From Paramoeba atlantica (Eukaryota; Protista; Discosea): a stretch of 64,000 nucleotides of DNA. Under the pieces are notes generated by a model that was given only the letters and a program-made list of their open reading frames with translations, searched no databases and was not told where the DNA came from. Positions 2,711-64,000 of the stretch are shown in pieces. The stretch covers positions 287,087 to 351,086 of the forward strand of contig CDRNVI010000045.1 of the NCBI GenBank assembly GCA_977017575.1, written 5' to 3'. The first letter of the stretch is position 1, and each line of letters starts with the position of its first letter. Position numbers and translations under genes: made by a program.

Positions 2711-3080
2711 GTGCACCTAATGCAAAGTTTCCTCGGCGCCGGCCGATCTTTCCCAGAAGAGGGGTCATTATTACAAACAAAAATACCAAAAAATATAGTT
2801 ATACAGCAATTATCAGAAGAAACAGTCTGCCAAGAAGTTTTGAAAGCCGAAAATGTCTTTCGCGAGAAGTTCGCGGAAGGAACAATGGACATTATGCGTC
2901 GCATATGGCGACGGTATCAAAGTTATGTGGGGCGGCTCCGAGAATACGGACATTACCTCGAGGAGGAGATATACCTAGCCGCATTTGCGGTGCATCTGAA
3001 CGAGGTTTAAAGCGATAAAACGGTTGCTCAATACCTTTGCCATTTAGAGAACGAATACGCTTTGCCAGGATCGCCGCTCC
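2711..3080 (+). pseudogene. Possible degenerate N-terminal (core-binding) fragment of a tyrosine recombinase
   Basis: IWRRYQSYV...YLAAFAVHL and, after a frameshift, SDKTVAQYLCHL resemble LWGRLELFC...LAPATLLSYTRNL of the YR at 29105-30253. An R-rich overlapping ORF (2407-3018) mirrors that element's layout. Confidence 0.35.
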
Positions 3081-3329
3081 CATTATTAGTTTACGTGATG
3101 AAATTTAGACGAGTAATAAGTGCATTTGTGCTGCCCCCCCGAGAAGGGGGGGTGTGAAAATTCACCAAAAATATTTGAATACAATAATTTATTATGTAAC
3201 GCACGTGTACTAAATTCTAATACAGAATTTAGTACAGAATTTAGAACTTTATTCATTTATTAATATATTTATTAATATATTTGTAGAATACATTCACCTT
3301 CAATACACGATACGTACAAGTCTTTGACA

Positions 3330-3600
3330 ATGAGCCGGATTGCGGAAGCTGTGCGTAGAACCTTATCCCTTTCTCGTGCGCAAAGTCCTGAACCTGATGA
3401 TCCCGTCCAATCCACGCGACGCACGCTCGAACGTACTTTAAATCCTGATGAAGTGCATCAACCTCCTCAAAATGACAGGGTAATGCCAGGATCACGGTTG
3501 GAAGAATTCTGTGAGCGTGTACGTGTTTTCTTGCGCAAAGGGCACAAAGCTAAGGTTCAAGCTGAGGTTTTGTTAAAGGTTAAGGTTTTGTTAAGGTTTT
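3330..3600 (+). pseudogene. 5' ORF1 fragment of a YR retrotransposon relative
   Basis: MSRIAEAVRRTLSLSRAQSP resembles MSGILNTVRRTLSMGRQHSP (ORF 30320-30664). Confidence 0.45.
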
Positions 3601-3609
3601 GTTTAAGGC

Positions 3610-3736
3610 AGGTTGGCCGAGGGTTCCGGTGGGGGGGAATCCCGTTAACAACGTGACACATGATTATTTGTTTTATGCAGGCTTTCTTTTGAACTATGTT
3701 TGTGCATGTGAATTCTATCTATATATCGTATTATGG
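3610..3736. repeat. Dispersed repeat of about 125 bp, inverted copy at about 35711-35836
   Basis: GGTTGGCCGAGGGTTCCGGTGGGGGGGAATCCCG...ATCGTATTATG is present as its reverse complement at 35.7-35.8 kb. Confidence 0.8.
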
Positions 3737-4033
3737 AATCTCATTCGTTGAATCGTTCAACGAACCGACGGCGCTTCGTTGAATATTCAACGAAGTAGAG
3801 ACGTAGCCCATAACTTAAATAACATTACATGTCAGAAAATATTTCACAATTTTCAAGACTTCTATAACAGCACATACTCATTTTTTTTTAACATACTCAT
3901 TTTCCGGACATTGGAATATTACCTATCAAATAATTATATTAGGACCGGAATCCAATCAATATCCGAAAGACTCAAGGCGGGCATCCAACATTAGAAAAAG
4001 GTGACCCGGACAGAAGAAAGGCAAAGCCCCGCT

Positions 4034-4290
4034 TCAACAACGAAGCCCTCCTACCCACTGTACGGCAGGAATGTATTGTCGTAGTTGAGAAACAACTGCA
4101 TAAGCAGAGAATTTTTCAATTTCGAGCTGAAAGGCTTGACGCACTACTTGAGTATCGCAGTCAGCCCTTTTCGACAAAGCCTTGAGGAGACTTTTCGTTT
4201 CTTCATGCAACAGGCCGTAATCAGTCATTGAGATGCATTGAAAAGATTCCGGGTCCATCCCTTTCTCTTGCACGTATTTCCGGTTTTTCC
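4034..4290 (-). pseudogene. 3' fragment of CRE/SLACS-like element (family 1)
   Basis: TDYGLLHEETKSLLKALSKRA...QLEIEKFSAYAVVSQLRQYIP matches the C-terminus of ORF 4356-7805. Confidence 0.85.
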
Positions 4291-4292
4291 TT

Positions 4293-4329
4293 TCTTTAAC
4301 GATAAAGATACAGTTTCTGTACCTTGTTG
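4293..4329 (+). other. Spliced-leader copy (37 nt) at the 5' end of a CRE-like element
   Basis: TCTTTAACGATAAAGATACAGTTTCTGTACCTTGTTG, containing the kinetoplastid/diplonemid SL core ACAGTTTCTGTAC...TTG; 26 nt upstream of the ATG. Confidence 0.85.
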
Positions 4330-4355
4330 ATTTTTTTTATATCAATTTAATCACT

Positions 4356-7300
4356 ATGACGCGCCCTGCTCGGGGATCCGCCAACACACCGAAGAGTATG
4401 AGTGTGAAATCTGGTCGTGTAACTGTAAAAATACGGACGCAAGACACGAACAGCAAAGAAAAGATCGTAAAAAGCGATGCAGCAATTAAGAATTCTACCA
4501 CGGAAAAGCCGAAGAAAACACCACGCATCCGAGTCATTGGAGCCGAACCTTTATCGAAGAACTGGGTCGATCACGGAACACCCACCATCACCCCGGTAAA
4601 GAACATCATCAAAATTACTCCGCAAAAATTCAAAATAGTCTCGAACCAAGAAAACTCTGGAAACGCACGCGAAATCAATACACAATTTTCGTTTCCAACA
4701 GCTGAAAACGGGCAAGAGAGTGACATCGAAAGTGAGCGTGATCAAATGACGCTAGACAGTGATTCCGACGCTGATCAGGGAGAAATGGCGATGCGAAACA
4801 ACAGCACAAAAGCAGCAGATCAAGTTCACAACACTGTGGCGAAATGGGGGAAAGGCACTGAATGCGTAATAGAATGGGGGTTTCGGCAGAATTCAGAGAG
4901 CTACAAATCGAAAGGGACTGTTGTTGGACGAACCGCGCGAAAAGGCAATGTTAAAATTAAAGCATCCTACGAACCAGCCTTAGGAAACCAAGGACCCAGC
5001 GGCGTCTTATACCTTCCACAGTCGGACAAAATTAAAATCTACAGTCTTCGGGCGACGAAACTTCTTCAAGTGGAGACGGCGATCCAGAACCTGGAGGAGG
5101 AATCAGAAAATGTCTCGTCTGACGACAGTGGCTGCGATCTCGACCCCCTCCCGGACCTTCCCAACATCGAGCCATCCTTCGCGGTGCATGTGGTAGCAAT
5201 CTTCCGGGCGATTATCCGAGGCTATGCCACTGTTGAACTTGATTCTGAGAAAGCAGCGATCTGGCACAAATTTATGAATGCGCCGCGAGACTCACTTGCT
5301 ACAGTGCGGGATGCAATTAGAACCCAAAGAGTGGGACACGTGCGAAAGGAACGTAACGAGCTATCAGATGGCATAAATCTAAGTGCAGAACAACGAGCCG
5401 AACTAGAAATCGACAGGCGCGCGATCCGAAACGCGTTGCGAACAGCCAAAGCAGGGAATCTGGGGAAAGCCACTCGAATTCTAGATAACGTTTACAAGGA
5501 CTCCACTCTTTCGGCCGAAGAAAAATTTCAGAAACTACGAGAATTGCATCCTGATGGACCCCCTATCCAAATACCGGAAGCTGACTTCCCACGCATCGGA
5601 GTTGTTGAAAGCTCGGAACTTCGTCTGGCAGTTGAGAAATTGGCTCGTGGAGCTTCCCCCGGACCAAGCGGGCTAAGTGAGAGTATGATGCGGTTGCTTG
5701 TAGACGATGATGTATCATGCCTTTCACTGTGCCACATGGTTCGAGATGTAATCAACGGAGAAGTTCCACTAAGCGTCCGGAAGCGCCTTACTCGCTGCAG
5801 AATCATCGCCCTACCAAAGCCGCAGAATGGGATACGTCCAGTTGCCATGGGAGACACTATTTTGAAAATCTGTGGATCTATTCTACTGCAGCGACATGAA
5901 ACCACCTTGAAGACATTCTTTGCACCAATTCAACGAGGAGTCCTACACAAAAATGCCTGCGAAACCATCGTCCACGAATTGCTTCAAGAATACGAGGACG
6001 GACATGCGTTGCTTACGGTAGATTTCAGCAATGCGTATAATACCCCGCGACGCGATGCCATTGCACAAACACTGGTAAGCAATCCCATATTCAAACCTTT
6101 CCTGCGCCTGTTCTACTTTGAGTATGGGCTACCTTCGGAGCTCCTCTTCTTCGCGCATAATGCCCTCTACGCCGTCTTGGAAAGTTCTTCCGGAATCCGC
6201 CAAGGTTCAGCTCTATCCTCCATGTACTTCTGTGCCCTTCTACAAAGCCCAATACGAGAAGTAGCCAGCCTATATCCCGACGTAACGATCAGAGCATACC
6301 AGGATGACGTGACCCTAAGCTCGAAAAACGTGTTGTCACTTGAGGCAGCGTTCTTGCACTTGCGCGAACTTACCAGTGATCTTAACCTGCATGTCAAGTT
6401 TCAGAAATGTGAATGGTTCCAAAAGAATACTACATTTGATGACGAACTATTGTCCCTGAACCGCTTAGGTGTTAACTCCCGGAATGATGCGCTTAAAATA
6501 TTGGGAGCGTACATAGGAGCAAATGAGGTGATAAAAGATCTTCTTCTACGGAAGATGGAAAAACACAAATGCCTCTTCCGTCGACTCCTGCTAATGGGTC
6601 CAAGCAATCTGTCCCTCGCAATTCTACGTCGATGCACAATTCCGCGACAAGATTATCATATGCGAGTTCATCGTCCGGAAGCAACCACGCGGCTAGCCGA
6701 AGCCTTCGAAGACCACGTTCAACAAGTTCTTAAGAAATGGTGCGGAGCTGACACACAAGCCTTGCAACTAGCGGTACTTCCTCAGAAACTAGGCGGCCTA
6801 GGATTGATCTCCTCGACTTTGAAGCAGAAATACTACTTTGAAACTGCCCGGAAATCTATTGTTGAGCACCCAAAACCCAATAACGCTCCAGTAGGTATAA
6901 AAGGTGGAGATAAAGTACACGCCAACGGACAAAGTCGTAGTGAAGTCGCCCAGAAGCTGCTGAAAAAGAAGATGAAAGAAGAACACGAAAAGAAGGCTTA
7001 CGAGCTGCGGAAGAATTCGCAATTGGAGCTTGTAATGAAACGCACTATGGAGAACAACTTGCATCTCGAAAGCACGAGCAATTATATCAATCCTTATTTA
7101 TTTCGATACACACTCATGATGCGGTTAGGAATCAGTTTACCCCAAGCTCCTGCCAAAGTCACATGCCCTGGATGCTGCACCCAAGAATCCCCATCCAGCA
7201 TCATTCCACATGTTGCAGGCTGCTCTCGTTGCTCTGGTATGAACTGCACACGCAAACATTCCCACATCGTCCGCTACCTATCAGAGTTATGTTCCAAAGC

Positions 7301-8939: not shown

Positions 8940-8953
8940 TCTGTACCTTGTGG
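8940..8953 (+). other. Probable SL remnant (13/14 match, TCTGTACCTTGTGG)
   Basis: It sits where the RT homology ends and precedes the structured island. Confidence 0.5.
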
Positions 8954-9062
8954 TTGTTGTTTTTTTTAATATTATTAACCCCCCGTTATGGGCATGTTCA
9001 CGTCAGGGCATCCGGCTTATGTCGGATGATGGGACTTAGCGATCCCAGCTTCCCGAGCTAAC

Positions 9063-9104
9063 TCACCCGGCGTCGCATAACAAGGCGCTAAAGAACTAGG
9101 GTGA
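9063..9104 (+). ncRNA. Unassigned structured motif, copy B
   Basis: TCACCC-G-GCGTC-GCATAACAA-GGCGC-TAAAGAACTA-GGGTGA; preceded by hairpins CATCCGGC/GTCGGATG, GGGA/TCCC and AGCT/AGCT. Confidence 0.7.
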
Positions 9105-9123
9105 ATCCGATGAATACAATATG

Positions 9124-10263
9124 GATGACACTACCCGGTGCCAGTAAAACGAGGCACTAAATAATTGGGTAGGGGGGACCTTCGATGAAGCTTCATCGAA
9201 AGTGTACAACTTTCGATGAAGCACATTGAAAGTTGTACACTTTCGATGAATCTTCATCGAAGGTGTTTTTGACTTTTTTTTTATTTTTTCAAATCTTCAC
9301 GCAAACGTTTTTCGCGGATCCATATAGACATTTTGACTTTTTTGGTGCTTCATCGAAGTGTTTTGTGAAGGCTCGTAGAGGAATTTCACCGTTTCTTCAG
9401 TTTATCTTCATCGAAGCGTTTTTGACTGATCCATATAAATATTTTGAGCGACAATCCTGCGGAAGGGGTAAACACAGGATTTTCGTTGAGTACTCAACGA
9501 AGTGCCGGATTTTCGTTGAGTGCTCAACGAACGGAAATTTACGGTGGAAATCAAGGACTTTTGCATAAGTCAAGGACTTTTGTGGAACATCCAAGAATTT
9601 TTTTTGATTTTCATTTTCCGTGCGTTCAGTATCCTACACTTCTCTATATACGTTGACAACGCCTGCGTAGCGAAAACTACGAAATTCAGTGAGCTTCGCA
9701 AATTGCTTCCCACTAACGACGCACAGGGGAACCCTACGCGGGGTACGGCTCAGGCCCGCTCACGCGGGCCCTCGCCGTTTCGCGGCCGCGCGCACCCCCG
9801 CTCACGCGGGGGCCCCCGCGCGGCCAAAATGGGTACTAAAATTTGTTATCAAGGTAGTTGGGCTTCGCCAATTGCTTCCCACGAATGGGTACTAAAATTT
9901 GTTATCAAGGTAGTTGGTCAAGATTATCAAGATTATCAAGTAGTTATCAGTTGGGCCTTTGTTCCTCCTCCCTCTAAGGTCCTGCAGATTTTTTACGGTC
10001 ACAGGGTACGTTCGTTGAGAAATCAACGAACGTACCCCTAAGCCAAAATGTGAAAGAAAACGGAAAGTCAGAATTCAGACAAAAAAACAAAAAATTATTG
10101 AATTTAAAATGAAATTATATGTTTCATGCAACGTGTTTTCAACAGCCAATGGAAAAATTCGTTCAAAAACAAAAAGTTAAAAAAGTCAAAAAAAGTCAAA
10201 AACAACTTCGATGAAGATTCATCGAAGGTCCCCCCTAGCCAAATAATTAGGGTGGATGTCATT
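9124..10263 (+). ncRNA. Unassigned structured motif, copy C, split by the TIR element (9124-9166 + 10249-10263)
   Basis: Removing 9167-10248 gives GATGACACTACCC-G-GTGCC-AGTAAAACGA-GGCAC-TAAATAATTA-GGGTGGATGTCATT. Confidence 0.7.
9167..10240. mobile_element. Non-autonomous DNA transposon (1074 bp), 34-bp TIRs, 8-bp TSD AAATAATT
   Basis: TIR GG(G/C)TAGGGGGGACCTTCGATGAA(G/T)CTTCATCGAA; TSD at 9159-9166 and 10241-10248; the empty site restores motif C. Confidence 0.9.
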
Positions 10264-10282
10264 CTGGCAACCTAGAATGGGT

Positions 10283-10339
10283 GGCACCGCCCGGTACCGA
10301 ATATAACAAGGTACTAAGAAACTAGGGTGGGTGCCATTC
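10283..10339 (+). ncRNA. Unassigned structured motif, copy D
   Basis: GGCACC-GCCC-G-GTACC-GAATATAACAA-GGTAC-TAAGAAACTA-GGGT-G-GGTGCC. Confidence 0.7.
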
Positions 10340-10432
10340 GGGCTAATCTTTGGAATGTGTTTGTGTTTTTTTTATCCACCCTCAAAAGATAGAGTGGTTT
10401 TTTTGGTCAAGGGGCGCCTTATTTGCATTACC

Positions 10433-10605
10433 TAAGGCGCAGGGGTATAGCGCACCCCACCTCCCTAGCTGTAACCTAATTCCTCTCCAAGCGGAGGTCA
10501 GCCGTAGCTTTCTATGGCTGGCTCTCCGGATACGTCGCAAGACGTATTCGGACTGCCCGTTTGGGGAGTTGAGGGGCCATAACTTTTCGGAGTCAAAAGG
10601 CCCAA
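10433..10605 (+). ncRNA. Multi-hairpin non-coding island upstream of ORF 10621
   Basis: Stems GCGCCTTA/TAAGGCGC, GGGGT/ACCCC, CAGCCGTAG/CTATGGCTG, and CCGGATACGTC-GCAA-GACGTATTCGG (GNRA loop). Confidence 0.45.
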
Positions 10606-10620
10606 TACATCATCATCATC

Positions 10621-12157
10621 ATGGGCATGTTCACCCGCAGTAGGGCGAAGGACACTGGAGTAGCTCCAGAGGTCCTACCGCTGCCACCTTCCCGGCGAAA
10701 GAAGAAAGTACCCGAGGAGCGACCTCCGCCGCCACCGCTTCCGCCACCGCCGCCGCCACCACCACCACCAACACTCCAGCCGCCGCTCGCGCATTCGCCG
10801 CCCTCGCCCGCTCCACCGCCATCTCCTCCACATACGCCTCATCGGTCGCCACCTCCAGCGTTGCCGCTGCCGATGTCTCCGCCAAAGAAGCAAACACCAG
10901 AGGAACCGCAGCCGGTGCCGCCCTCGCCGCCAGCCCAAACGCCGCGGCGCTCTCATAAGCCGTCTCCGGTGCCAAGTCATCCGCAGTCGCCGCCACAGCA
11001 GTTGGAGTCAGCACCACCTTCGCCGTTACCATCACACGCGTCGCTGCGACCTTCTCTGCCGAATCATCCGCAGTCGGTACGTTCGCCGCTACCATCGAAC
11101 ACGTCAGCGCGGTTGTTTGTGACCCCAATTCATTCGCAATCGCCGTTACCACAGGCACGGTCGGCACCATTGCCTCTGACATCGCACGTGCGATCGTCTC
11201 CGATGCCACATCATCCGCAATCGCCGCCACCTTCGCCACCGCAGCCACCTTCGCCACCGCTGCCGCAGTCGCAGTCGGTACCGTCTTCACCTCCACCATC
11301 TCACGCACCGTTGCAAATCAAATCTCCGACGCACAGTCATCCGGGATCTCCTCCACCGCCACCTTTATCTCCACCACCGGTGCCAACGCCGAAGCAGTCG
11401 GTCAAGAATCCGCCAAAGAAACCGTCCTTCTACGACACACTCGCCGCACATTTCCCGTCCCGCTTCCCCACGAGGGCCAGGCGTAATTGTTTCCAAGTCT
11501 CATCACCGACCCCGACACCCCCGCCAAAACAACATACACCGCCCATAGCACTAGTTCCAGAGCCTCCTTCGGCGCCATCTCAGCCATCTCCGGTCATAAC
11601 GCCCTCTCCGCCTTCTTTTCCGCCATCATCTCCGCATAAATATCGTCCGAGCATGCACACAGCATCCCGGAGAGCGATGGTACGAGCACTGAATGGTGTG
11701 AGTGTTGAATCAAAATCTACAGATCTTGAAAGCAAAGGAAGCTCTTCGACACCGTCCCCATTGCCGCCTCCCTTACCAACGCCGAACACGCCACCACCTA
11801 TTATGCACTGTGAGGAGTCGCCCATTGCAAAAGGAGTAACGTACAACTTATACAGAACTCCAATCTTCGACACTGATTTCGAGAATCCTGAAGAACACAC
11901 AGTCATTGCTCATAATCCTGCACACGATCAAAGATGCCAAAACACATCAACCCCCTTATTCCCACAAAATACAAATGATCAAGCACCCATTTGTGTTGAT
12001 GATGAGTTTTTCGATTGCCCATCTCCACCAAAAGATACGACGATCTACGAACAAGCAACGAGTATTGTCGTTTCTCCCCGCGAAAATCAGACATCGAATG
12101 CACCTCCACACGAGAATAATCGGACGGGAACCCACCAGCCAAGTGTATCTGAAGAAA
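10621..12157 (+). pseudogene. 5' proline-rich part of family-2 CRE-like ORF, truncated before RT
   Basis: Starts MGMFTRSRAKDTGVAP...RRKKK like 15815; cut at about 12158 by the next element's 5' end. Confidence 0.75.
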
Positions 12158-13745
12158 ATAAAACTCTTGGAAATGTAATTGGGCCTTTGTACTAGTGTCA
12201 GGAATTAAGGAAAACATGAAGGACTTATTCGTGAACTACGGCATGATATTATTTGCAAAATTAGACAGACTTTTCTTATTTGTATTTCGCACGAATAAAA
12301 GTGGAAATGGTGCAAACACGTTCGAAAGCACATGATTCTCAAGAGGACTATGCCACGGATAGCGACACTGAACAAACGTGCGGCACATATTACCCAAAAC
12401 CGAATTCGACACAAATCACTTCGAGCCACTCACTTCCAGATGTTTTCCTCACCGAACAGGTCAATACAGTCGTGGAAAAGCTAACGCGTGCACTTGAAAA
12501 AGTCACTTCGAAGGTTGATGCGATGGAGGAGCGTGAATGGAAAAGGCGAAAAGAGACAAACATTACGGATCCATCTGCACCGCGACACGGACAAGCACCT
12601 GGGAAAACCTTATGTCCTCTTCCAACCTCCTTGAAAAAGAGATGCAGTGTGCCAGAAGAGCTCAACAAGCAATACGCCGCACAAAGGGTTATGCTCCCAG
12701 AGGAAGTAGAGAGTCAAGTCAATGAGGTTATGGCGACCATGCAACAGAATGACATAGAAGTCGAAATAACCTGGTTCCCCGTTGGAGGTAGGAAAGAGAC
12801 AGCGACAACATGGCGAGGTACGGTAGAGGACAATGGAGACGAGGAAAATCCTATCATTGTTTCCTACCCATGGGGTAACTATCCTCTGCCTAATAGCAAC
12901 GTGTGTTATACGCGCATCGTGATATCAGCAAGTGAGCCAAAGATGCCAGGCAAATTGCCCGAATCGGACAATGAAACTGCACCATCAGAAGAGACGAACG
13001 ACAGTTTCAACCTCCGGGACGTTACAACATGGAACACATACATTACCCAGGGGCCACTAGGGATTGAAATCCACGGCGAGGGCTCACAGCTGCATCAAGT
13101 AAAGTTAAAATGATATAAAAATAGATATACTCATCAAGAAATAAGACTCTGAAAATAGTTCGCATTACTCAGCCCTGAAATATGAGTTCACCTAAATATT
13201 TCCAAAATGAATGAAAAAAGGCCTTGCGCGCTATAACGTAAATATTAAGTACTAGTAGTACGAAGTGAAGGGGCTCAGCCCCCCACACCCCGCAGCCTCC
13301 GAACCCACACCCTGCAGCCGAGGCTGGGGGTTGGTGGGTGGGCCTCGAAACTCGTGTACAGCTACAAAAAGGAAATAAAGTCTACTAAATATGTTGATGT
13401 TTGAAAGTCATAAACTGAAGAATATGAGAAAGAAGAAACTAATAATACATGTGCCCCGAAGGGCCATATCATAAGTTCATATATTTATGTGCCCCGAAGG
13501 GCCAGGTTATTAAACGTAAATAGCCCTCGCCTAAATTTCATCTCGTAAACTATTAGAAATATTGAAACAGCGGTTACGAACGGCGCTGGATCTCCCTTCT
13601 CGAATGTCACCACAGCTACAAGCCCTTTGGGATATCTTGTGTGCTTGGATAGACGATAGCGCAGAAAGAGGGGGCGTGAACAGCGACGCCGTCAATCACA
13701 AAAACGTCGGCCAAAGCACAGTTGACCAGATACGCATTCTGCAAG
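12158..13745 (+). mobile_element. Unspliced copy of the MVQTRSK element (acceptor AG 12263-12264), interrupted at 13071-13555 and truncated at about 13745
   Basis: Near-identical to the reverse complement of 470-1986; ORF pieces 12307-13070 and 13561-13745. Confidence 0.8.
13071..13555. mobile_element. 485-bp insertion flanked by GAAAT repeats; probable solo terminal-repeat unit of a YR retrotransposon
   Basis: GAAAT at 13066-13070 and 13556-13560, single in the uninterrupted copy. Contains GGGGGTTGGTGGG and two ATGTGCCCCGAAGGGCC motifs also found at 23892-24130. Confidence 0.65.
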
Positions 13746-15784: not shown

Positions 15785-18700
15785 AACTACACTCTAAAAC
15801 TACACTCTTACTTAATGGGAATGTTCACGCGGAGCAGAGCCAAAGAGACGGGAGTAGCTCCTGTCGTTGAGCCCTTGCCGGCGAATCGTAGAAAGAAGAA
15901 ATCCATTGGACAACCGGCGCCACCGCTAGCGCCACCGCCTGCGCCATCACCTGCGCCACCGCCCACGACACCTCCCCCGTCACCGCCGGCACAACCATCT
16001 TTCACTGCTCCGCCGTGCGCTACGTCATCCCCTCTTCCCGCTGCGATGGATACTGCATCGTTTCCTCCGCGCATTGCGACGTCTCCCAATGCACCTCCAC
16101 CGCCTCTTCCGTTGCCACTTTCACCGCCATCTTCGCCGATACACAGCCAGGCGTCATCTCCACAGTCTCTCGAAACTCCCTCAATGACACGCCCAAGCAT
16201 GCACACGTCGGCTAGGCGAGCCCAAACGAGAGCGCTCAATTACCGACGTAGCAGCAACTTAACTGTTGGGGTTACATCGGCAGAGTCTGGGGTTACGTCG
16301 ACGACGGATACCACAGCGCTTAGCGTACCGACGGTACCCAGAACAAGGAAAATCCGATTTGCTACCTCGACGAACGGAAAAACTACGAAAGAAGCCGTAA
16401 CTACGACAGCAAACGAATCAACAAACGAATCAGAGTGGGGGAATCGTTTGAAGCAAACTTGCGCAGTAGCGGCTTCTGCTCTCGTAACGGCGACCAACGC
16501 CATGTCCGGAGCGATGTTTAACTATGAAAAATCCCATTACCAGAAGAACGCCACGTATATACCGATACCTTCCAAGGGAGTGTCATTCAACGGCGAAGGA
16601 TATGTACACGACGTGCGGGCATTCGACATATTTGCAGACAATCCGTTGCAAGATGACGCGTTCCCATCAGTTAGCAGCGGGACCACACAGCCGCTCGCAC
16701 CAAGCCCGCAGACTACACCCGGAAATTCTCGTGGGGAGGTTACAGCGGGAACTTTTAGCAATGCAACCTTGCTCTCAGACACCCCGAACGGTGGAAACGT
16801 GAGGAATTTGGAAGCATGTACCGTGGAAAGGAACGACGCTAGAATCGTGCCGGGATCTCTTCCATCCCCGGTTCCCATCGCATCCGACTTCCTGGACTGC
16901 GAATCGCCAATACATATACTTTCCGACTCTGGAGACAACGCAAATACCAACCTTGTCGAAGATCCAGTACATCAGTTTTTCAGTGAAACGCCAGACTTTC
17001 CAAGAGTCGCGTCACAATTCCGTCATATCGACCCCAAGGTTCATTTTCCTGTCCCTCCAGACGAGCTGTACGACGCAACCCTTCACGCAAAAGTGGGAGA
17101 CCGATGCATTTTGGCTTGGAGCTTTGATTGTTCGCCAAGCCTCAACATATCACAAGGAATCGTTAAAGCGTCGCAGAAAAGAAAGCACTTGAACAAATGG
17201 ACCATGGAGTATGTGGGGATTGTGGGACACAAGATCGGAACAACCTTCACTGGTCATATTCCCCCGCAAGCAAACGTTCGCGTCTTTAAGATCGTGTGGG
17301 AAAATAACACACATCAGGAAAGTGATCCTGGAAGTATAAAAAGCTGCCGGTCTGAAGAAAGAATTAACCGCGCGCTTCGCGTTAATTATCAACACACAGA
17401 AAACGACCTAGATCTTGAGCCCATGCCTACTCTGCGATCAGTTGCACCGGAATTCATTCCTTGCGTAGTTGCAATTTACCGAGACATCGTTCGAGATTAC
17501 GCAGAATCCCCATACCCACAAAGGAACCGCATATGGCATCGAACGTTATCAGCCATGAAATATTCTCTTGCCACAATTCGGAAGGCAACGGCGAAACGAC
17601 GTCGACGTCGCCCGCGCGATTTTTCGTCATTGCAAGACGGCGAATCTCAAAACGGACACACCTCCACCGCCAACGGACCACGTCTTATAGATGACAAACG
17701 GGCCATCAAGAAAGCAACTAGTCTGGCATTAGACGGGTGTGTTTCCAAAGCGTCCCGAGTTATTAACCAGGAAATTACACCACGAACACTCAGCGACTCG
17801 GAAACCATTGAAAAACTTCGTGCTTTGCATCCAGATCTCCCCACCACATTTCGCCTCCCGCAAGATGCTCCGATGACAGCGTGTATTACGCCTGTCGAGC
17901 TTCGGGAGGCCGGAAGACGCATGGCCAAAGGGGCGGCGCCAGGACCAACAGGCACAACGGATTCAATTTTGCGCATCCTGTTAGACGACGAGGTGTGCTC
18001 GTTAAGTTTGTGTCACATGATTACCGACCTGATTAATGGATCACTGTCTGAAGAAGTAATGAAACGCGTGAAGAGAGCGCGACTTGTAGCGATTCCCAAA
18101 CCTGGAAACGGAATTCGTCCAATCGCTGTGGGGGAGGTCTGGTTGAAGCTTGCCGAAATCGTCCTTCTGCAGCGGCACGAGAAACAGCTTGTCCCGCTCT
18201 TTGCGCCTTATCAGTTTGGTGTTATGATAAAGTCTGGCTGCGAGCATGTCGTGCATAAGCTTAACGAGAAATACACAGAGGGATGCGCCATTCTGGCTAT
18301 TGATCTCAGAAACGCCTTCAATTCACCAGCCAGGGATGAAATTGCAAGAGCCGTGTTCGGATTCCACGGTCTCCGCCCCTTTCAGCGTCTCTTTAATGCC
18401 GAATACTCCAGTCCATCAGAACTTCTTTATTACGGGAGCAACGGCAATCTTGGAGCCACCTTGAAAAGTTCAGCCGGGGTGAGGCAGGGGTCGCCGTTGT
18501 CCACGATTATGTTCTGCGCGTTTATGCAACCAATTTTAGAGATCGTTGCTTCAGAATTCCCGGCACTTCGCATATACGCCTACATCGACGACATCAGCTT
18601 CGCATCAAAGGACTCAGAACTAATTGCCAACGCTTACAACCGTCTTCGAGTTTTATTGACTGCTAAGCTAGTGGAATTATCCCCAACAAAATGCGTCTGG

Positions 18701-30600: not shown

Positions 30601-30844
30601 AAATGAAATCTCTAAACAAAACAAACAAATCATATCTCATAATATAAATATTATGTGCCCCCAAGGGCCATTATATCAATCATCCTAAATTTCTAAACGT
30701 ACACTTATATAAACAAAACAAACAAATCATATCTCATAATATAAATATTATGTGCCCCGAAGGGCCATTATATCAATCATCCTAAATTTCTAAACGTATA
30801 CTTATAACAAATATACGAATTCTCAATACTATTAAAATGTGAAG

Positions 30845-31218
30845 GGCACTGGTCGAGCTCCATTGTGGTAGAGCTCCGCTGGTGAGAGAGCCTCGCAAGC
30901 TCCACACACCCTAGCGTGAGTCATCCCTGGTGGTGGAACAGAATATAACGACTGATCCACTACTTCTTTGCCCTAGGATGCGAATCCATCGGGCATTGAA
31001 GTCACGGATGACGAGTCAGGCCACGCAACCTGACAGGTATTGCTTGTCTATCTGCGAGTGCGGCATCCCTCTGGGAAAGTCTGCGCGCGACTGACAGCGT
31101 ACCACCCACGGAGTACGGTAATACCCGGTGCCGTTTCGAACGAGCACTAAATAACTAGGGTGTACTCTGAACCCATAGCCAGTCATGGCCAAACGGGTTA
31201 AACAACAACAACAACAAC
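30845..31218 (+). ncRNA. Multi-hairpin island of about 370 nt ending in motif copy F (31110-31168) and a (CAA)n tract
   Basis: Stems GAGCTC/GAGCTC, GAGC/GCTC, GGTGGTGGA/TCCACTACT, GGAT-GCGA-ATCC, TCAGG/CCTGA, AGTC/GACT, CGTAC/GTACG; TACCC-G-GTGC...GCAC-TAAATAACTA-GGGTG. Confidence 0.55.
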
Positions 31219-31219
31219 T

Positions 31220-31750
31220 TCCAACACATGTCCTGGCATGTTCCGTTTTGTTTTCAGGGTGGATCGTGGCTGCGCACGCAGAGCACTCATAGTAACTGAA
31301 CTGACGAGGTTCACGTTCACACGGCAAGCCAGCTCGGAGGCATAGCTCGTAAAGGTAGCGAACAAGGGCATGATGCTTCGTAGTTACATTGTGTCCTGCA
31401 CATTTGACGCATCCAGGTATGTGGGCTAGCGCTTCCGAGGAGCTTAGGAGCTTTTTGCATCCCGGGCATAGCAACGAGTTTGGCAGTTGTGGGTGGCTTA
31501 TTTTTAGTCGTGACATGATGTTTAGCGTGTAGATGTGCGAAGGAATGATTTTGCGATTCCCGATAAGCCATTCATAGCTCCCTTTCTTGCTGCAAGCTTT
31601 AATCGTCGGAGCCCACTCCTTGTTTTTGAGAAGATTTGTCTGGATTTCTGTGGCTCTTTTGGTCTCCGTCACCACCTCGTCCTCAGGTGTCTTATGTGAT
31701 TCCTCCAACGTCCCTGCAGGTGCTGGCGGTTCCATGCGCTGTGCCATCCG
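31220..31750 (-). pseudogene. Internal zinc-knuckle fragment of CRE-like element
   Basis: CPGCKK..HIPGCVKC..TKHHALVRYL..CEREPRQF. Confidence 0.85.
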
Positions 31751-60600: not shown

Positions 60601-61340
60601 CAATCCACCTAATAGCATCCTGCAGAGCTTTAGCCTTCTTACGGTAACTGTCCATGGCAACGGCCGACGGATTTAACGGTCGTAAAACGAGTTCATCCAG
60701 AGTAGTGGGATCTTTTGGTGGAGGGGTGGCCGCCTGAGCGTACGTTGGTTCCTTGCTCCAGTTCGTAAATGCTGTGTTCCGAGCGGTGTTCGTTCTTATT
60801 TTGATGCATCCTTCTGGGTGACGAATGGTTGGGCTCTCGTCTTGCGACACTTTGTCAGCTCTTGTCTGAAGAAGGTTGAGTTGTTTGTTTCGCCGATTGA
60901 AGAAATTTGAAGACAGCAGTGCGTTCTTAATTGTGACTTTGCAGTCACTTTTCGGCAGTGGGGTCGGCGATCGACGCATCGACGGAGGAGGAGATTGTGG
61001 ACACTCAGATGGCGTTGATGGTGGTGATGGCGGCGGTAGTGGCGGCGGAAGTGGCGGTGAAGTAGGTGACCGCGATGCGGCGGGGACGGGCGATGGAAGA
61101 GACGGAGTTTCAGTGGACAAAGTCGTGGGTGGTGAGGGCGGCGGGGGCGGCGGGGGCGGCGAAGGAGAAGCGCTCGGTTCGGACGGAGCCTCAGGCGGTT
61201 TCTCCTCAATTGTTTTCTTCCTGCGACGGGTCGGAGGTAGAGGCTGTACGACGGGTGCTACTCCCGTTTCTTTCGCCCGGCTCCGCGTGAACATGCCCAT
61301 GAAAGTGAGAAAGTAATAGAAAATAAAGCAACAATTCAAC
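60600..61340 (-). pseudogene. 5' proline-rich part of family-2 CRE-like element, abutting the terminal array
   Basis: MGMFTRSRAKETGVAP at 61300; the UTR ends in TTGTTG (SL-like) at 61337-61342. Confidence 0.78.
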
Positions 61341-64000
61341 AAAGAGGGAGAAAGAGGAAGAAAGAGGAAGAAAGAGGAAGAAAGAGGAAGAAAGAGGAAG
61401 AAAGAGGAAGAAAGAGGAAGAAAGAGGAAGAAAGAGGAAGAAAGAGGAAGAAAGAGGAAGAAAGAGGAAGAAAGAGGAAGAAAGAGGAAGAAAGAGGAAG
61501 AAAGAGGAAGAAAGAGGAAGAAAGAGGAAGAAAGAGGAAGAAAGAGGAAGAAAGAGGAAGAAAGAGGAAGAAAGAGGAAGAAAGAGGAAGAAAGAGGAAG
61601 AAAGAGGAAGAAAGAGGAAGAAAGAGGAAGAAAGAGGAAGAAAGAGGAAGAAAGAGGAAGAAAGAGGAAGAAAGAGGAAGAAAGAGGAAGAAAGAGGAAG
61701 AAAGAGGAAGAAAGAGGAAGAAAGAGGAAGAAAGAGGAAGAAAGAGGAAGAAAGAGGAAGAAAGAGGAAGAAAGAGGACGAAAGAGGACGAAAGAGGAAG
61801 AAAGAGGAAGAAAGAGGAAGAAAGAGGAAGAAAGAGGAAGAAAGAGGAAGAAAGAGGAAGAAAGAGGAAGAAAGAGGAAGAAAGAGGAAGAAAGAGGAAG
61901 AAAGAGGAAGAAAGAGGAAGAAAGAGGAAGAAAGAGGAAGAAAGAGGAAGAAAGAGGAAGAAAGAGGAAGAAAGAGGAAGAAAGAGGAAGAAAGAGGAAG
62001 AAAGAGGAAGAAAGAGGAAGAAAGAGGAAGAAAGAGGAAGAAGAGGAAGAAAGAGGAAGAAAGAGGAAGAAAGAGGAAGAAAGAGGAAGAAAGAGGAAGA
62101 AAGAGGAAGAAAGAGGAAGAAAGAGGAAGAAAGAGGAAGAAAGAGGAAGAAAGAGGAAGAAAGAGGAAGAAAGAGGAAGAAAGAGGAAGAAAGAGGAAGA
62201 AAGAGGAAGAAAGAGGAAGAAAGAGGAAGAAAGAGGAAGAAAGAGGAAGAAAGAGGAAGAAAGAGGAAGAAAGAGGAAGAAAGAGGAAGAAAGAGGAAGA
62301 AAGAGGAAGAAAGAGGAAGAAAGAGGAAGAAAGAGGAAGAAAGAGGAAGAAAGAGGAAGAAAGAGGAAGAAAGAGGAAGAAAGAGGAAGAAAGAGGAAGA
62401 AAGAGGAAGAAAGAGGAAGAAAGAGGAAGAAAGAGGAAGAAAGAGGAAGAAAGAGGAAGAAAGAGGAAGAAAGAGGAAGAAAGAGGAAGAAAGAGGAAGA
62501 AAGAGGAAGAAAGAGGAAGAAAGAGGAAGAAAGAGGAAGAAAGAGGAAGAAAGAGGAAGAAAGAGGAAGAAAGAGGAAGAAAGAGGAAGAAGAGGAAGAA
62601 AGAGGAAGAAAGAGGAAGAAAGAGGAAGAAAGAGGAAGAAAGAGGAAGAAAGAGGAAGAAAGAGGAAGAAAGAGGAAGAAAGAGGAAGAAAGAGGAAGAA
62701 AGAGGAAGAAAGAGGAAGAAAGAGGAAGAAAGAGGAAGAAAGAGGAAGAAAGAGGAAGAAAGAGGAAGAAAGAGGAAGAAAGAGGAAGAAAGAGGAAGAA
62801 AGAGGAAGAAAGAGGAAGAAAGAGGAAGAAAGAGGAAGAAAGAGGAAGAAAGAGGAAGAAAGAGGAAGAAAGAGGAAGAAAGAGGAAGAAAGAGGAAGAA
62901 AGAGGAAGAAAGAGGAAGAAAGAGGAAGAAAGAGGAAGAAAGAGGAAGAAAGAGGAAGAAAGAGGAAGAAAGAGGAAGAAAGAGGAAGAAAGAGGAAGAA
63001 AGAGGAAGAAAGAGGAAGAAAGAGGAAGAAAGAGGAAGAAAGAGGAAGAAAGAGGAAGAAAGAGGAAGAAAGAGGAAGAAAGAGGAAGAAAGAGGAAGAA
63101 AGAGGAAGAAAGAGGAAGAAAGAGGAAGAAAGAGGAAGAAAGAGGAAGAAAGAGGAAGAAAGAGGAAGAAAGAGGAAGAAAGAGGAAGAAAGAGGAAGAA
63201 AGAGGAAGAAAGAGGAAGAAAGAGGAAGAAAGAGGAAGAAAGAGGAAGAAAGAGGAAGAAAGAGGAAGAAAGAGGAAGAAAGAGGAAGAAAGAGGAAGAA
63301 AGAGGAAGAAAGAGGAAGAAAGAGGAAGAAAGAGGAAGAAAGAGGAAGAAAGAGGAAGAAAGAGGAAGAAAGAGGAAGAAAGAGGAAGAAAGAGGAAGAA
63401 AGAGGAAGAAAGAGGAAGAAAGAGGAAGAAAGAGGAAGAAAGAGGAAGAAAGAGGAAGAAAGAGGAAGAAAGAGGAAGAAAGAGGAAGAAAGAGGAAGAA
63501 AGAGGAAGAAAGAGGAAGAAAGAGGAAGAAAGAGGAAGAAAGAGGAAGAAAGAGGAAGAAAGAGGAAGAAAGAGGAAGAAAGAGGAAGAAAGAGGAAGAA
63601 AGAGGAAGAAAGAGGAAGAAAGAGGAAGAAAGAGGAAGAAAGAGGAAGAAAGAGGAAGAAAGAGGAAGAAAGAGGAAGAAAGAGGAAGAAAGAGGAAGAA
63701 AGAGGAAGAAAGAGGAAGAAAGAGGAAGAAAGAGGAAGAAAGAGGAAGAAAGAGGAAGAAAGAGGAAGAAAGAGGAAGAAAGAGGAAGAAAGAGGAAGAA
63801 AGAGGAAGAAAGAGGAAGAAAGAGGAAGAAAGAGGAAGAAAGAGGAAGAAAGAGGAAGAAAGGGAAGAAAGAGGAAGAAAGAGGAAGAAAGAGGAAGAAA
63901 GAGGAAGAAAGAGGAAGAAAGAGGAAGAAAGAGGAAGAAAGAGAAGAAAGAGGAAGAAGAAAGAGGAAGAAAGAGGAAGAAAGAGGAAGAAAGAGGAAGA
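61341..64000 (+). repeat. (AAAGAGGAAG)n purine-only 10-bp tandem array running to the window end
   Basis: About 265 units, highly homogeneous; first unit AAAGAGGGAG, two AAAGAGGACG variants at 61771-61790, scattered indels. Confidence 0.97.

Follow-up and report, generated by a model that had tools for sequence, protein, structure and literature searches.

A covarying RNA hairpin was recognized in a stretch of 64,000 nucleotides (nt) of DNA from Paramoeba atlantica (assembly GCA_977017575.1, contig CDRNVI010000045.1, positions 287,087 to 351,086 of the forward strand), which is called the window below and is numbered from its first letter. The hairpin, designated as the module, is carried by several families of short interspersed elements (SINEs) and by the 3' untranslated region (3'UTR) of an autonomous long interspersed element (LINE). 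It is a new structured RNA family of retroposons and a cis-element common to the LINE and the SINEs. Six copies in the window had been claimed in a first-pass annotation made from the sequence alone, and all six are present where they had been placed, all on the + strand. They are listed here with the elements that carry or interrupt them; LTR stands for long terminal repeat and TIR for terminal inverted repeat. Scores refer to R1, a covariance model built from 22 diverse module copies and searched against the window and the genome.

1974–2037, + strand: copy A, a fragment consisting of the 3' half of a SINE2-type E module and CAUUCAGCAUAAUCUUUGGAG; R1 22.6 bits for the 3' half (match 1959–2024).
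2354–2420, + strand: module B, a single module with the inner stem GGUGUC/GACACU; R1 57.5 bits.
9002–10622, + strand: SINE1 copy, a non-autonomous non-LTR retroposon of ~540 bp whose head (modules C, D and E) is followed by a U-rich tract, a structured 3' domain and a (CAT)n tail.
9051–9116, + strand: module C, with the outer helix CUCACCC/GGGUGA(A/G), the inner stem GGCGUC/GGCGCU and the internal loop UAAAGAACUA; R1 65.6 bits.
9119–9166, + strand: 5' part of module D, up to the TIR insertion; R1 match 9119–9184.
9167–10240, no strand assigned: non-autonomous TIR DNA transposon of 1074 bp, which interrupts module D within its internal loop and does not belong to the module.
10249–10267, + strand: 3' part of module D (A-GGG and the 3' strand of the outer helix); R1 match 10219–10267, with continuity seen in locus L043.
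10275–10342, + strand: module E, with the inner hairpin GGUACC-GAAUAUAACAA-GGUACU, the loop UAAGAAACUA and a 12-bp outer helix with one bulged G; R1 67.8 bits.
10343–10400, + strand: U-rich tract after module E (CUAAUCUUUGGAAUGUGUUUGUGUUUUUUUU...AAAAG), recognized by sequence inspection.
30832–31220, + strand: short retroposon of ~385 bp with an (AAC)n tail, carrying module F at 31109–31175; R1 48.7 bits.

Structure, covariation and copy number of the module

The module is a long bulged hairpin of 55–65 nt with two helices, and it is fully nested. The outer helix is variable in sequence and runs into C-C-C/G-G-G. The loop on the 3' strand is conserved and A-rich (9–10 nt, (U/C)AARNAAYUA), with zero or one nucleotide opposite. 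The inner stem of 5–6 bp covaries as GYRYC/GRYRC and is closed by a conserved G-U, and the 3' part of the apical loop reads AAC(A/G)A. A carrier has a single module or up to four in tandem. The E type is the most widespread, and a pyrimidine-rich tract lies 3' of the E-type modules in the families inspected.

Covariation was analyzed in two alignments: A1, in which 22 copies drawn from different repeat families were aligned with MAFFT, and A2, with 70 distinct rows. RNAalifold predicted the two-helix fold unaided from the unfitted A1, with an inner stem of 6 bp. Standard pairs occupy ~90% of the cells, compared with 32–44% after sliding the 3' partner by 1–3 columns. Compensatory changes are seen in 7–10 of the 12–13 pairs of the fold, both sides have changed in 8 pairs in A1 and in 10 pairs in A2, and the covariation score was reached by none of 500 shuffles. 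In one variant, CCC/GGG is swapped compensatorily for GUC/GAC. These results bear out the earlier observation that both the inner stems and the outer helices change with their pairing kept. The minimum free energy fold of the whole SINE1 RNA reproduces modules D and E (z = −6.4). Mutual information outside the helices was dominated by family structure and yielded no pseudoknot candidate. The module is under selection as a structured RNA.

G-U pairs outnumber A-C pairs by 111 to 34, and every copy of the module is in sense orientation relative to its carrier. The RNA is therefore the + strand, which the first-pass annotation had already taken to be the functional one. The R1 search of the − strand of the window gave zero matches, and the matches on the + strand are exactly the six claimed copies, with D as two halves. 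The pattern CCCGGYRYC-N3-12-AAYRAGRYRCTAA has 4 matches in the window (0.00 expected), and the 3' consensus ACTAARNAAYTAGGG, allowing up to 2 mismatches, has 7 (1.18 expected).

The genome contains hundreds of copies of the module; all genome-wide copy numbers are lower bounds. All 150 candidates scored with R1 in the genome exceed 59 bits. The core 14-mer CTAARNAAYTAGGG occurs 380 times in the 45.7-Mb assembly, compared with 5 times for the reversed control. Module DNA is also present in contigs from sequencing runs, none of which is on record as RNA. Scanning of metagenome contigs with E-type and general patterns gave no match. Rfam contained no relevant match at the gathering score for the whole window, at E-values up to 10 for SINE1, or at E-values up to 0.1 for five other loci, in keeping with the first-pass annotation, which had left the module unassigned. 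Two tandem arrays, L075 (G000:C87, 6.1-kb period) and L076 (G000:C83, 2.5-kb period), include module-bearing SINE fragments inside the repeat unit, and the opposite strand of one array has a 537-aa open reading frame (ORF). Segmental amplification, and not retroposition, thus accounts for some of the copies in the genome.

Retroposons carrying the module

The SINE1 copy of the window is flanked by a 14-bp target site duplication (TSD), ATGGGCATGTTCAC, at 8988–9001 and 10621–10634. At least 40 copies elsewhere show 96–99% identity, the same 3' end base, variable 5' truncation and TSDs of 10–14 bp, and the (CAT)n tail is seen at at least 29 loci. SINE1 thus has the marks of a short, non-coding retroposon (TSDs, variable truncation at the 5' end, an invariant 3' end and a tail of simple repeats), and the same holds for the element carrying module F and for SINE1b, SINE2 and SINE3. 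Several SINE1 TSDs begin with (C)AT, which is consistent with annealing of the nicked target to the (CAT)n tail. In three loci (L043, L049 and L064), the 5' junction of full-length SINE1 shows a tandem duplication of the first 15–20 nt (GTCAGGGCATCCGGCTTAT) or an extra (T)AT. These junction duplications suggest template jumping at the 5' end of the RNA through the internal repeat CTTATGTC.

A tandem triple of modules had been described for the window once the TIR element is removed. The arrangement itself is real, as modules C, D and E lie 69 and 75 nt apart in uninterrupted copies, but it represents one SINE1 insertion, not three independent occurrences. SINE1 copies elsewhere are without the TIR element; module D is intact in 42 genomic copies, and the intact SINE1 in L043 (1501–2040, minus strand) reads through continuously. 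The TIR element has terminal inverted repeats of ~24 bp, GG(G/C)TAGGGGGGACCTTCGATGAA, and an 8-bp TSD, AAATAATT, at 9159–9166 and 10241–10248. It also contains internal short inverted repeats (TTCGATGAAG...CTTCATCGAA), and related pieces are found in L025 and L027. Shortened arrangements of the module were observed as well. In one contig (L058:1415–1542), module C is joined to module E and 126 nt are skipped at a shared CCCGG, which appears to be a recombinant form of SINE1 with a reduced number of modules. A similar deletion lies between the two modules of a LINE in L073.

At least four SINE families, SINE1, SINE1b, SINE2 and SINE3, have a common head with 81–90% identity, composed of the leader GTCAGGGCAT... 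and modules C, D and E; the SINE3 head includes an additional fourth module. No relationship exists among the tails of these families, which are (CAT)n, (AACAAT)n, (AATC)n and (ATCAAGTT)n. In other short elements, the number of modules ranges from one to three. Copy A of the window is 96–98% identical to SINE2 copies over 1984–2037. The element with module F has four other copies with 96–99% identity, a constant 3' end at 31218–31220 and differing 5' ends, and the module lies ~45 nt upstream of the (AAC)n tail. Module B is preceded by a C-rich repeat at 2040–2320, as in the L005/L011 family. This repeat is an imperfect tandem array of CCGCCGCGCCACCCG-like units, and the same layout stands before an E-type module in L005, L010 and L011. 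In L011, the reverse strand (1–1232) encodes a LINE ORF with a C-terminal RNase H domain and has a (GGATA)n tail, and a module-bearing element with the C-rich region, an E-type module and a polypyrimidine tract begins directly downstream of that LINE.

The autonomous carrier, a CRE-like LINE, was found at L078 (G000:C5:138500–145500). It has a spliced leader (SL) at 2767–2805, followed by a 1001-aa ORF with the reverse transcriptase domain RVT_1 (2856–5861). Its 3'UTR of ~515 nt (5862–6375) contains two E-type modules, at 6067–6134 and 6201–6268. The C-terminal part of the ORF is 61–63% identical to the CRE-like ORFs of the window. The same 3'UTR arrangement recurs in L074, L020, L073 and the independent ENA contig L071, and the junction between the 3'UTR and the module is preserved in at least 7 copies with 89–100% identity. 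The RNA element in the 3'UTR of this autonomous LINE is the same as that of the non-autonomous elements. Between SINE1 and the module-bearing LINE, the module cores are the only common sequence, and such restriction to a single RNA element classically marks a signal that acts in trans. The first-pass annotation had proposed a selected + strand RNA module that travels with retroelement RNAs, and the SINE families and the LINE 3'UTR are such carriers.

The SL of the host is AACTTTAACGATAAAGATACAGTTTCTGTACCTTGTTG, and judged by this sequence the host is a kinetoplastid-type protist. The genuine SL RNA gene forms a tandem array with a 1454-bp period (L036/L037, G000:C3:780.7–782.3 kb), in which AACTTTAACGATAAAGATACAGTTTCTGTACCTTGTTG is directly followed by GTATGAGAAGC; the start of its intron is identical to that of trypanosomatid SL RNA. 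No module lies inside this SL RNA gene, and a full-text search of the literature for the SL sequence found no mention of it. In addition, ~440 dispersed genomic matches to the SL plus GT (L031–L035, L038–L040) belong to a repeat that begins with a 5'-truncated SL (…ATAAAGATACAGTTTCTGTACCTTGTTG), continues with GTACATTTTGCTAGCCC… and includes a long hairpin, CCCGGAAACGGGC…GCCCGTTTCCGG. This repeat, which is unrelated to the module, looks like another SL-led retroposon family.

SINE1 of the window itself interrupts an SL-led CRE-like LINE (8943–9001 and 10621–12195) within its first codons (ATGGGCATGTTCAC). The SL remnant of the interrupted LINE lies at ~8943, with a small internal duplication, GTACCTTGTGGTTGTTG. 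The N-terminus MGMFTRSRAK opens this LINE, the ORF at 15815 and the reversed element at ~61290. The last part of the window (61337–64000) is a pure purine-strand satellite, (GAAAGAGGAA)n, which borders directly on the 5' end of a − strand CRE-like element.

Possible functions of the module

The first-pass annotation had offered three roles for the module: self-cleaving, splicing-related and protein-binding. Protein binding appears to fit best. The combination of purine-rich unpaired loops, a covarying scaffold, tandem arrangement, sense-only orientation and sharing between the LINE and the SINEs is the pattern of a protein-binding cis-element used in trans. The module may well be a signal for retrotransposition or ribonucleoprotein (RNP) assembly, bound by a LINE protein or by a needed host factor, and this reading is tentatively preferred here. 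The conserved unpaired purines on the conserved scaffold would constitute the putative protein-binding site. This site would enrol the RNA into the retrotransposition RNP of the LINE, through the reverse transcriptase (RT) or ORF protein of the LINE or through a host factor. Non-autonomous elements with the same cassette would be mobilised in trans, tandem repeats of the module would raise avidity, and the simple-repeat tail specific to each element would be the start site of reverse transcription.

Several observations weigh against this reading. The stem-loops recognized in stringent LINE/SINE pairs are typically terminal, and RT recognition usually resides in the SINE tail. The modules of the LINE lie ~107 and 240 nt from its 3' end, and those of SINE1 occupy the 5' third and are separated from the tail by more than 200 nt. 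The SINE families with the common head differ in their tails, the usual site of RT recognition. The module is missing from about nine further CRE-like LINE copies of the window, and the cassette is thus not general to the clade. Neither the window nor the loci examined yielded a partner LINE for SINE1, sought by the 3' domain and by the (CAT)n tail that it should have.

Since the modules are non-terminal, stand in the heads of SINEs with different tails and are missing from other CRE-like LINEs, a role for a host factor is a serious rival. The cassette might recruit a host protein that confers export, stability or localisation on an RNA without an SL; this is rather unlikely, but it fits the position of the modules in a head common to SINE families whose tails are different and presumably LINE-specific. 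Full-length SINE1 starts with GTCAGGG without an SL and the LINEs here are SL-led, and both the tandem repetition and the conserved A-rich unpaired loops speak for the same possibility. It is countered by the module-bearing LINE, which is itself SL-led and would therefore need no SL substitute. In such a role, the cassette would be comparable to the constitutive transport elements (CTEs). The CTEs of simple retroviruses are long hairpins with repeated conserved internal loops, and they function better in multiple copies. The module resembles them as a long hairpin with conserved purine-rich internal loops on a retroelement RNA, but the loop sequences are unrelated and the likeness is an analogy only. 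An RNA partner is considerably less probable than a host protein. The 3' arm and loops of E-type modules might pair with the 3' end of the SL, and the pairing would cyclise the LINE mRNA or tether SINE RNA to SL-bearing RNAs or SL RNA. The E-module sequence AACAAGGUAC-UA-AGAAACU is complementary to the SL segments CAGUUUCU/GUACCUUGUU at 17 of 17 positions with a 2-nt bulge, a score reached by none of 2000 shuffles. Eight E-type contexts that have otherwise diverged, both LINE modules among them, have kept the inner hairpin GGUACC...AACAAGGUAC, and the module-bearing LINE is SL-led. Against this, the duplex energy is unexceptional compared with shuffled SL (p ~0.2 for the LINE 3'UTR and ~0.07 for SINE1), and a module-free LINE 3'UTR gives a comparable energy. 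The loop positions that would pair vary among E types, and the C, D, F and B types have only AACAAG in common with the anti-SL sequence, which is not significant. The prior of a GUAC stem is ~1/8 under the GYRYC constraint. Such pairing is accordingly rated very improbable, and so is a more specific version, in which the E module would act as an SL sensor: its apical and internal loops would pair with the last ~18 nt of the SL, in the LINE at the 5' end of its own trans-spliced mRNA, which would be cyclised so that only mature full-length LINE templates would be used and SINEs would hitch-hike on SL-bearing RNAs.

The remaining alternatives concern the module as a processing signal or as a relic of its source. 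A splicing signal is improbable. It could be a 30–32-nt GU/GC-AG mini-intron with a fused branch point (CUAA) and acceptor (CUAG/G), or a branch-point element or enhancer of trans-splicing for the U tract and AG. YRCUAAR is like the branch-point consensus and CUAG/G like an acceptor, and in the examined families a polypyrimidine tract with AG lies within 5–25 nt downstream of E-type modules. At the supposed 5' splice site, however, the dinucleotide is either GU, GC or AU and changes together with the bases it pairs with, the supposed intron is retained in all retroposed copies, and the C, D, B and F types have no following U tract. The spliced E junction, allowing up to 2 mismatches, has no genomic match compared with dozens of unspliced copies, and no genomic copy joins the SL to the part of SINE1 downstream of the U tract. 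The splicing-related role in the first-pass annotation thus loses its ground, as no intron-less genomic copy exists and the 5' dinucleotide follows the helix. There is also little to recommend a SINE head derived from a cellular small RNA (tRNA-, 7SL-, 5S- or snRNA-like), possibly with an internal promoter, in which the modules would be the structure of the source RNA; this, too, seems very improbable. A head common to families with different tails is how SINEs are classically built, a U8 run closes the head, and AAUUUUUGG between the hairpins of SINE1b resembles an Sm site. But ARAGORN found no tRNA-like head in six loci, Rfam gave no small RNA at a permissive threshold, and no stand-alone source gene was found. 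The modules also stand singly near 3' tails and in the LINE 3'UTR, and the Sm-like element is missing from other families. An Sm-site reading of AAUCUUUGG / AAUUUUUGG after module E holds for SINE1, SINE1b and SINE2 alone and does not extend to the other carriers. The least credible possibility is a self-cleaving ribozyme, related to that of hepatitis delta virus (HDV) or of a new class, that would process retroelement co-transcripts. Retroelement-borne ribozymes are common elsewhere, and two loops of the module have conserved unpaired nucleotides. The 5' ends of three independent truncated SINE1 copies lie no more than 5 nt from the base of module D, but this cluster is marginal (3 of the 8 5'-truncated SINE1 copies in the sampled loci; p ~0.07, a rough estimate). 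The HDV fold is a nested double pseudoknot of P1, P1.1, P2, P3 and P4, in which the 3' strand of P1 comes after P3 and that of P2 after P4. The echo of HDV-like ribozymes in the first-pass annotation does not hold, because the module is a single, fully nested bulged hairpin without P2/P3 or P1.1 partners; the flanks differ between families and supply no conserved P2/P3 partner, and no ribozyme family matched at E-values up to 10 for SINE1 or up to 0.1 for five other loci. The loops bear a resemblance to loop B of the hairpin ribozyme, but the topology is different and Rfam gave no match. Furthermore, the modules are internal and in tandem in retroposed copies, so cleavage would destroy the template, and the retention of tandem internal copies in retroposed DNA argues against efficient cleavage. 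Nothing in the analysis, which included no cleavage assay, pointed to the module being a ribozyme or an intron.

Relation to known elements and significance

The module can be compared with several known systems. Stringent-type LINE RTs recognise stem-loops common to LINE 3'UTRs and SINEs, as in the eel pair UnaL2/UnaSINE1, and the R2 protein binds a structured 3'UTR. The module is similar to these in being a hairpin common to an autonomous LINE 3'UTR and non-autonomous retroposons, with covarying stems and conserved loop nucleotides. It differs in being non-terminal, in occurring as one to four tandem copies and in lying in the heads of SINEs with differing tails, and there is no sequence or structural homology. 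Like the cores of CORE-, V-, Deu- and Ceph-SINEs, it is a conserved segment in SINE families with different LINE-derived tails; unlike them, it is a short repeated covarying hairpin that is also present in a LINE.

Among kinetoplastid retroposons, L1Tc, ingi, RIME, NARTc and SIDER have Pr77 (PMC8190864), one copy of a 77-nt element that occupies the very 5' end and is active as a promoter and as an HDV-like ribozyme. Both Pr77 and the module are hallmarks common to autonomous and non-autonomous kinetoplastid retroposons. The module, in contrast, is internal, repeated, nested and present also in 3'UTRs, and it shows no sequence similarity to Pr77 and no match to the HDV family. A literature search on kinetoplastid SINEs and retroposons gave no description of the module.

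To our knowledge, the retroposon biology of this kinetoplastid group is known almost only from parasitic trypanosomatids. The hallmark common to autonomous and non-autonomous elements here is a repeated internal hairpin, neither a 5' Pr77/HDV-like element nor a terminal 3' stem-loop. For genome annotation, the covariance model marks the whole repeat superfamily. If the E module did act as an SL sensor, an RNA-RNA mechanism would couple trans-splicing to retrotransposition, a coupling of which we know of no description. If a CRE-like RT or a host factor selects RNA by the module, it would represent a compact RNA-protein recognition system, and such a handle for RNA selection would explain the upkeep of several SINE families with different tails.

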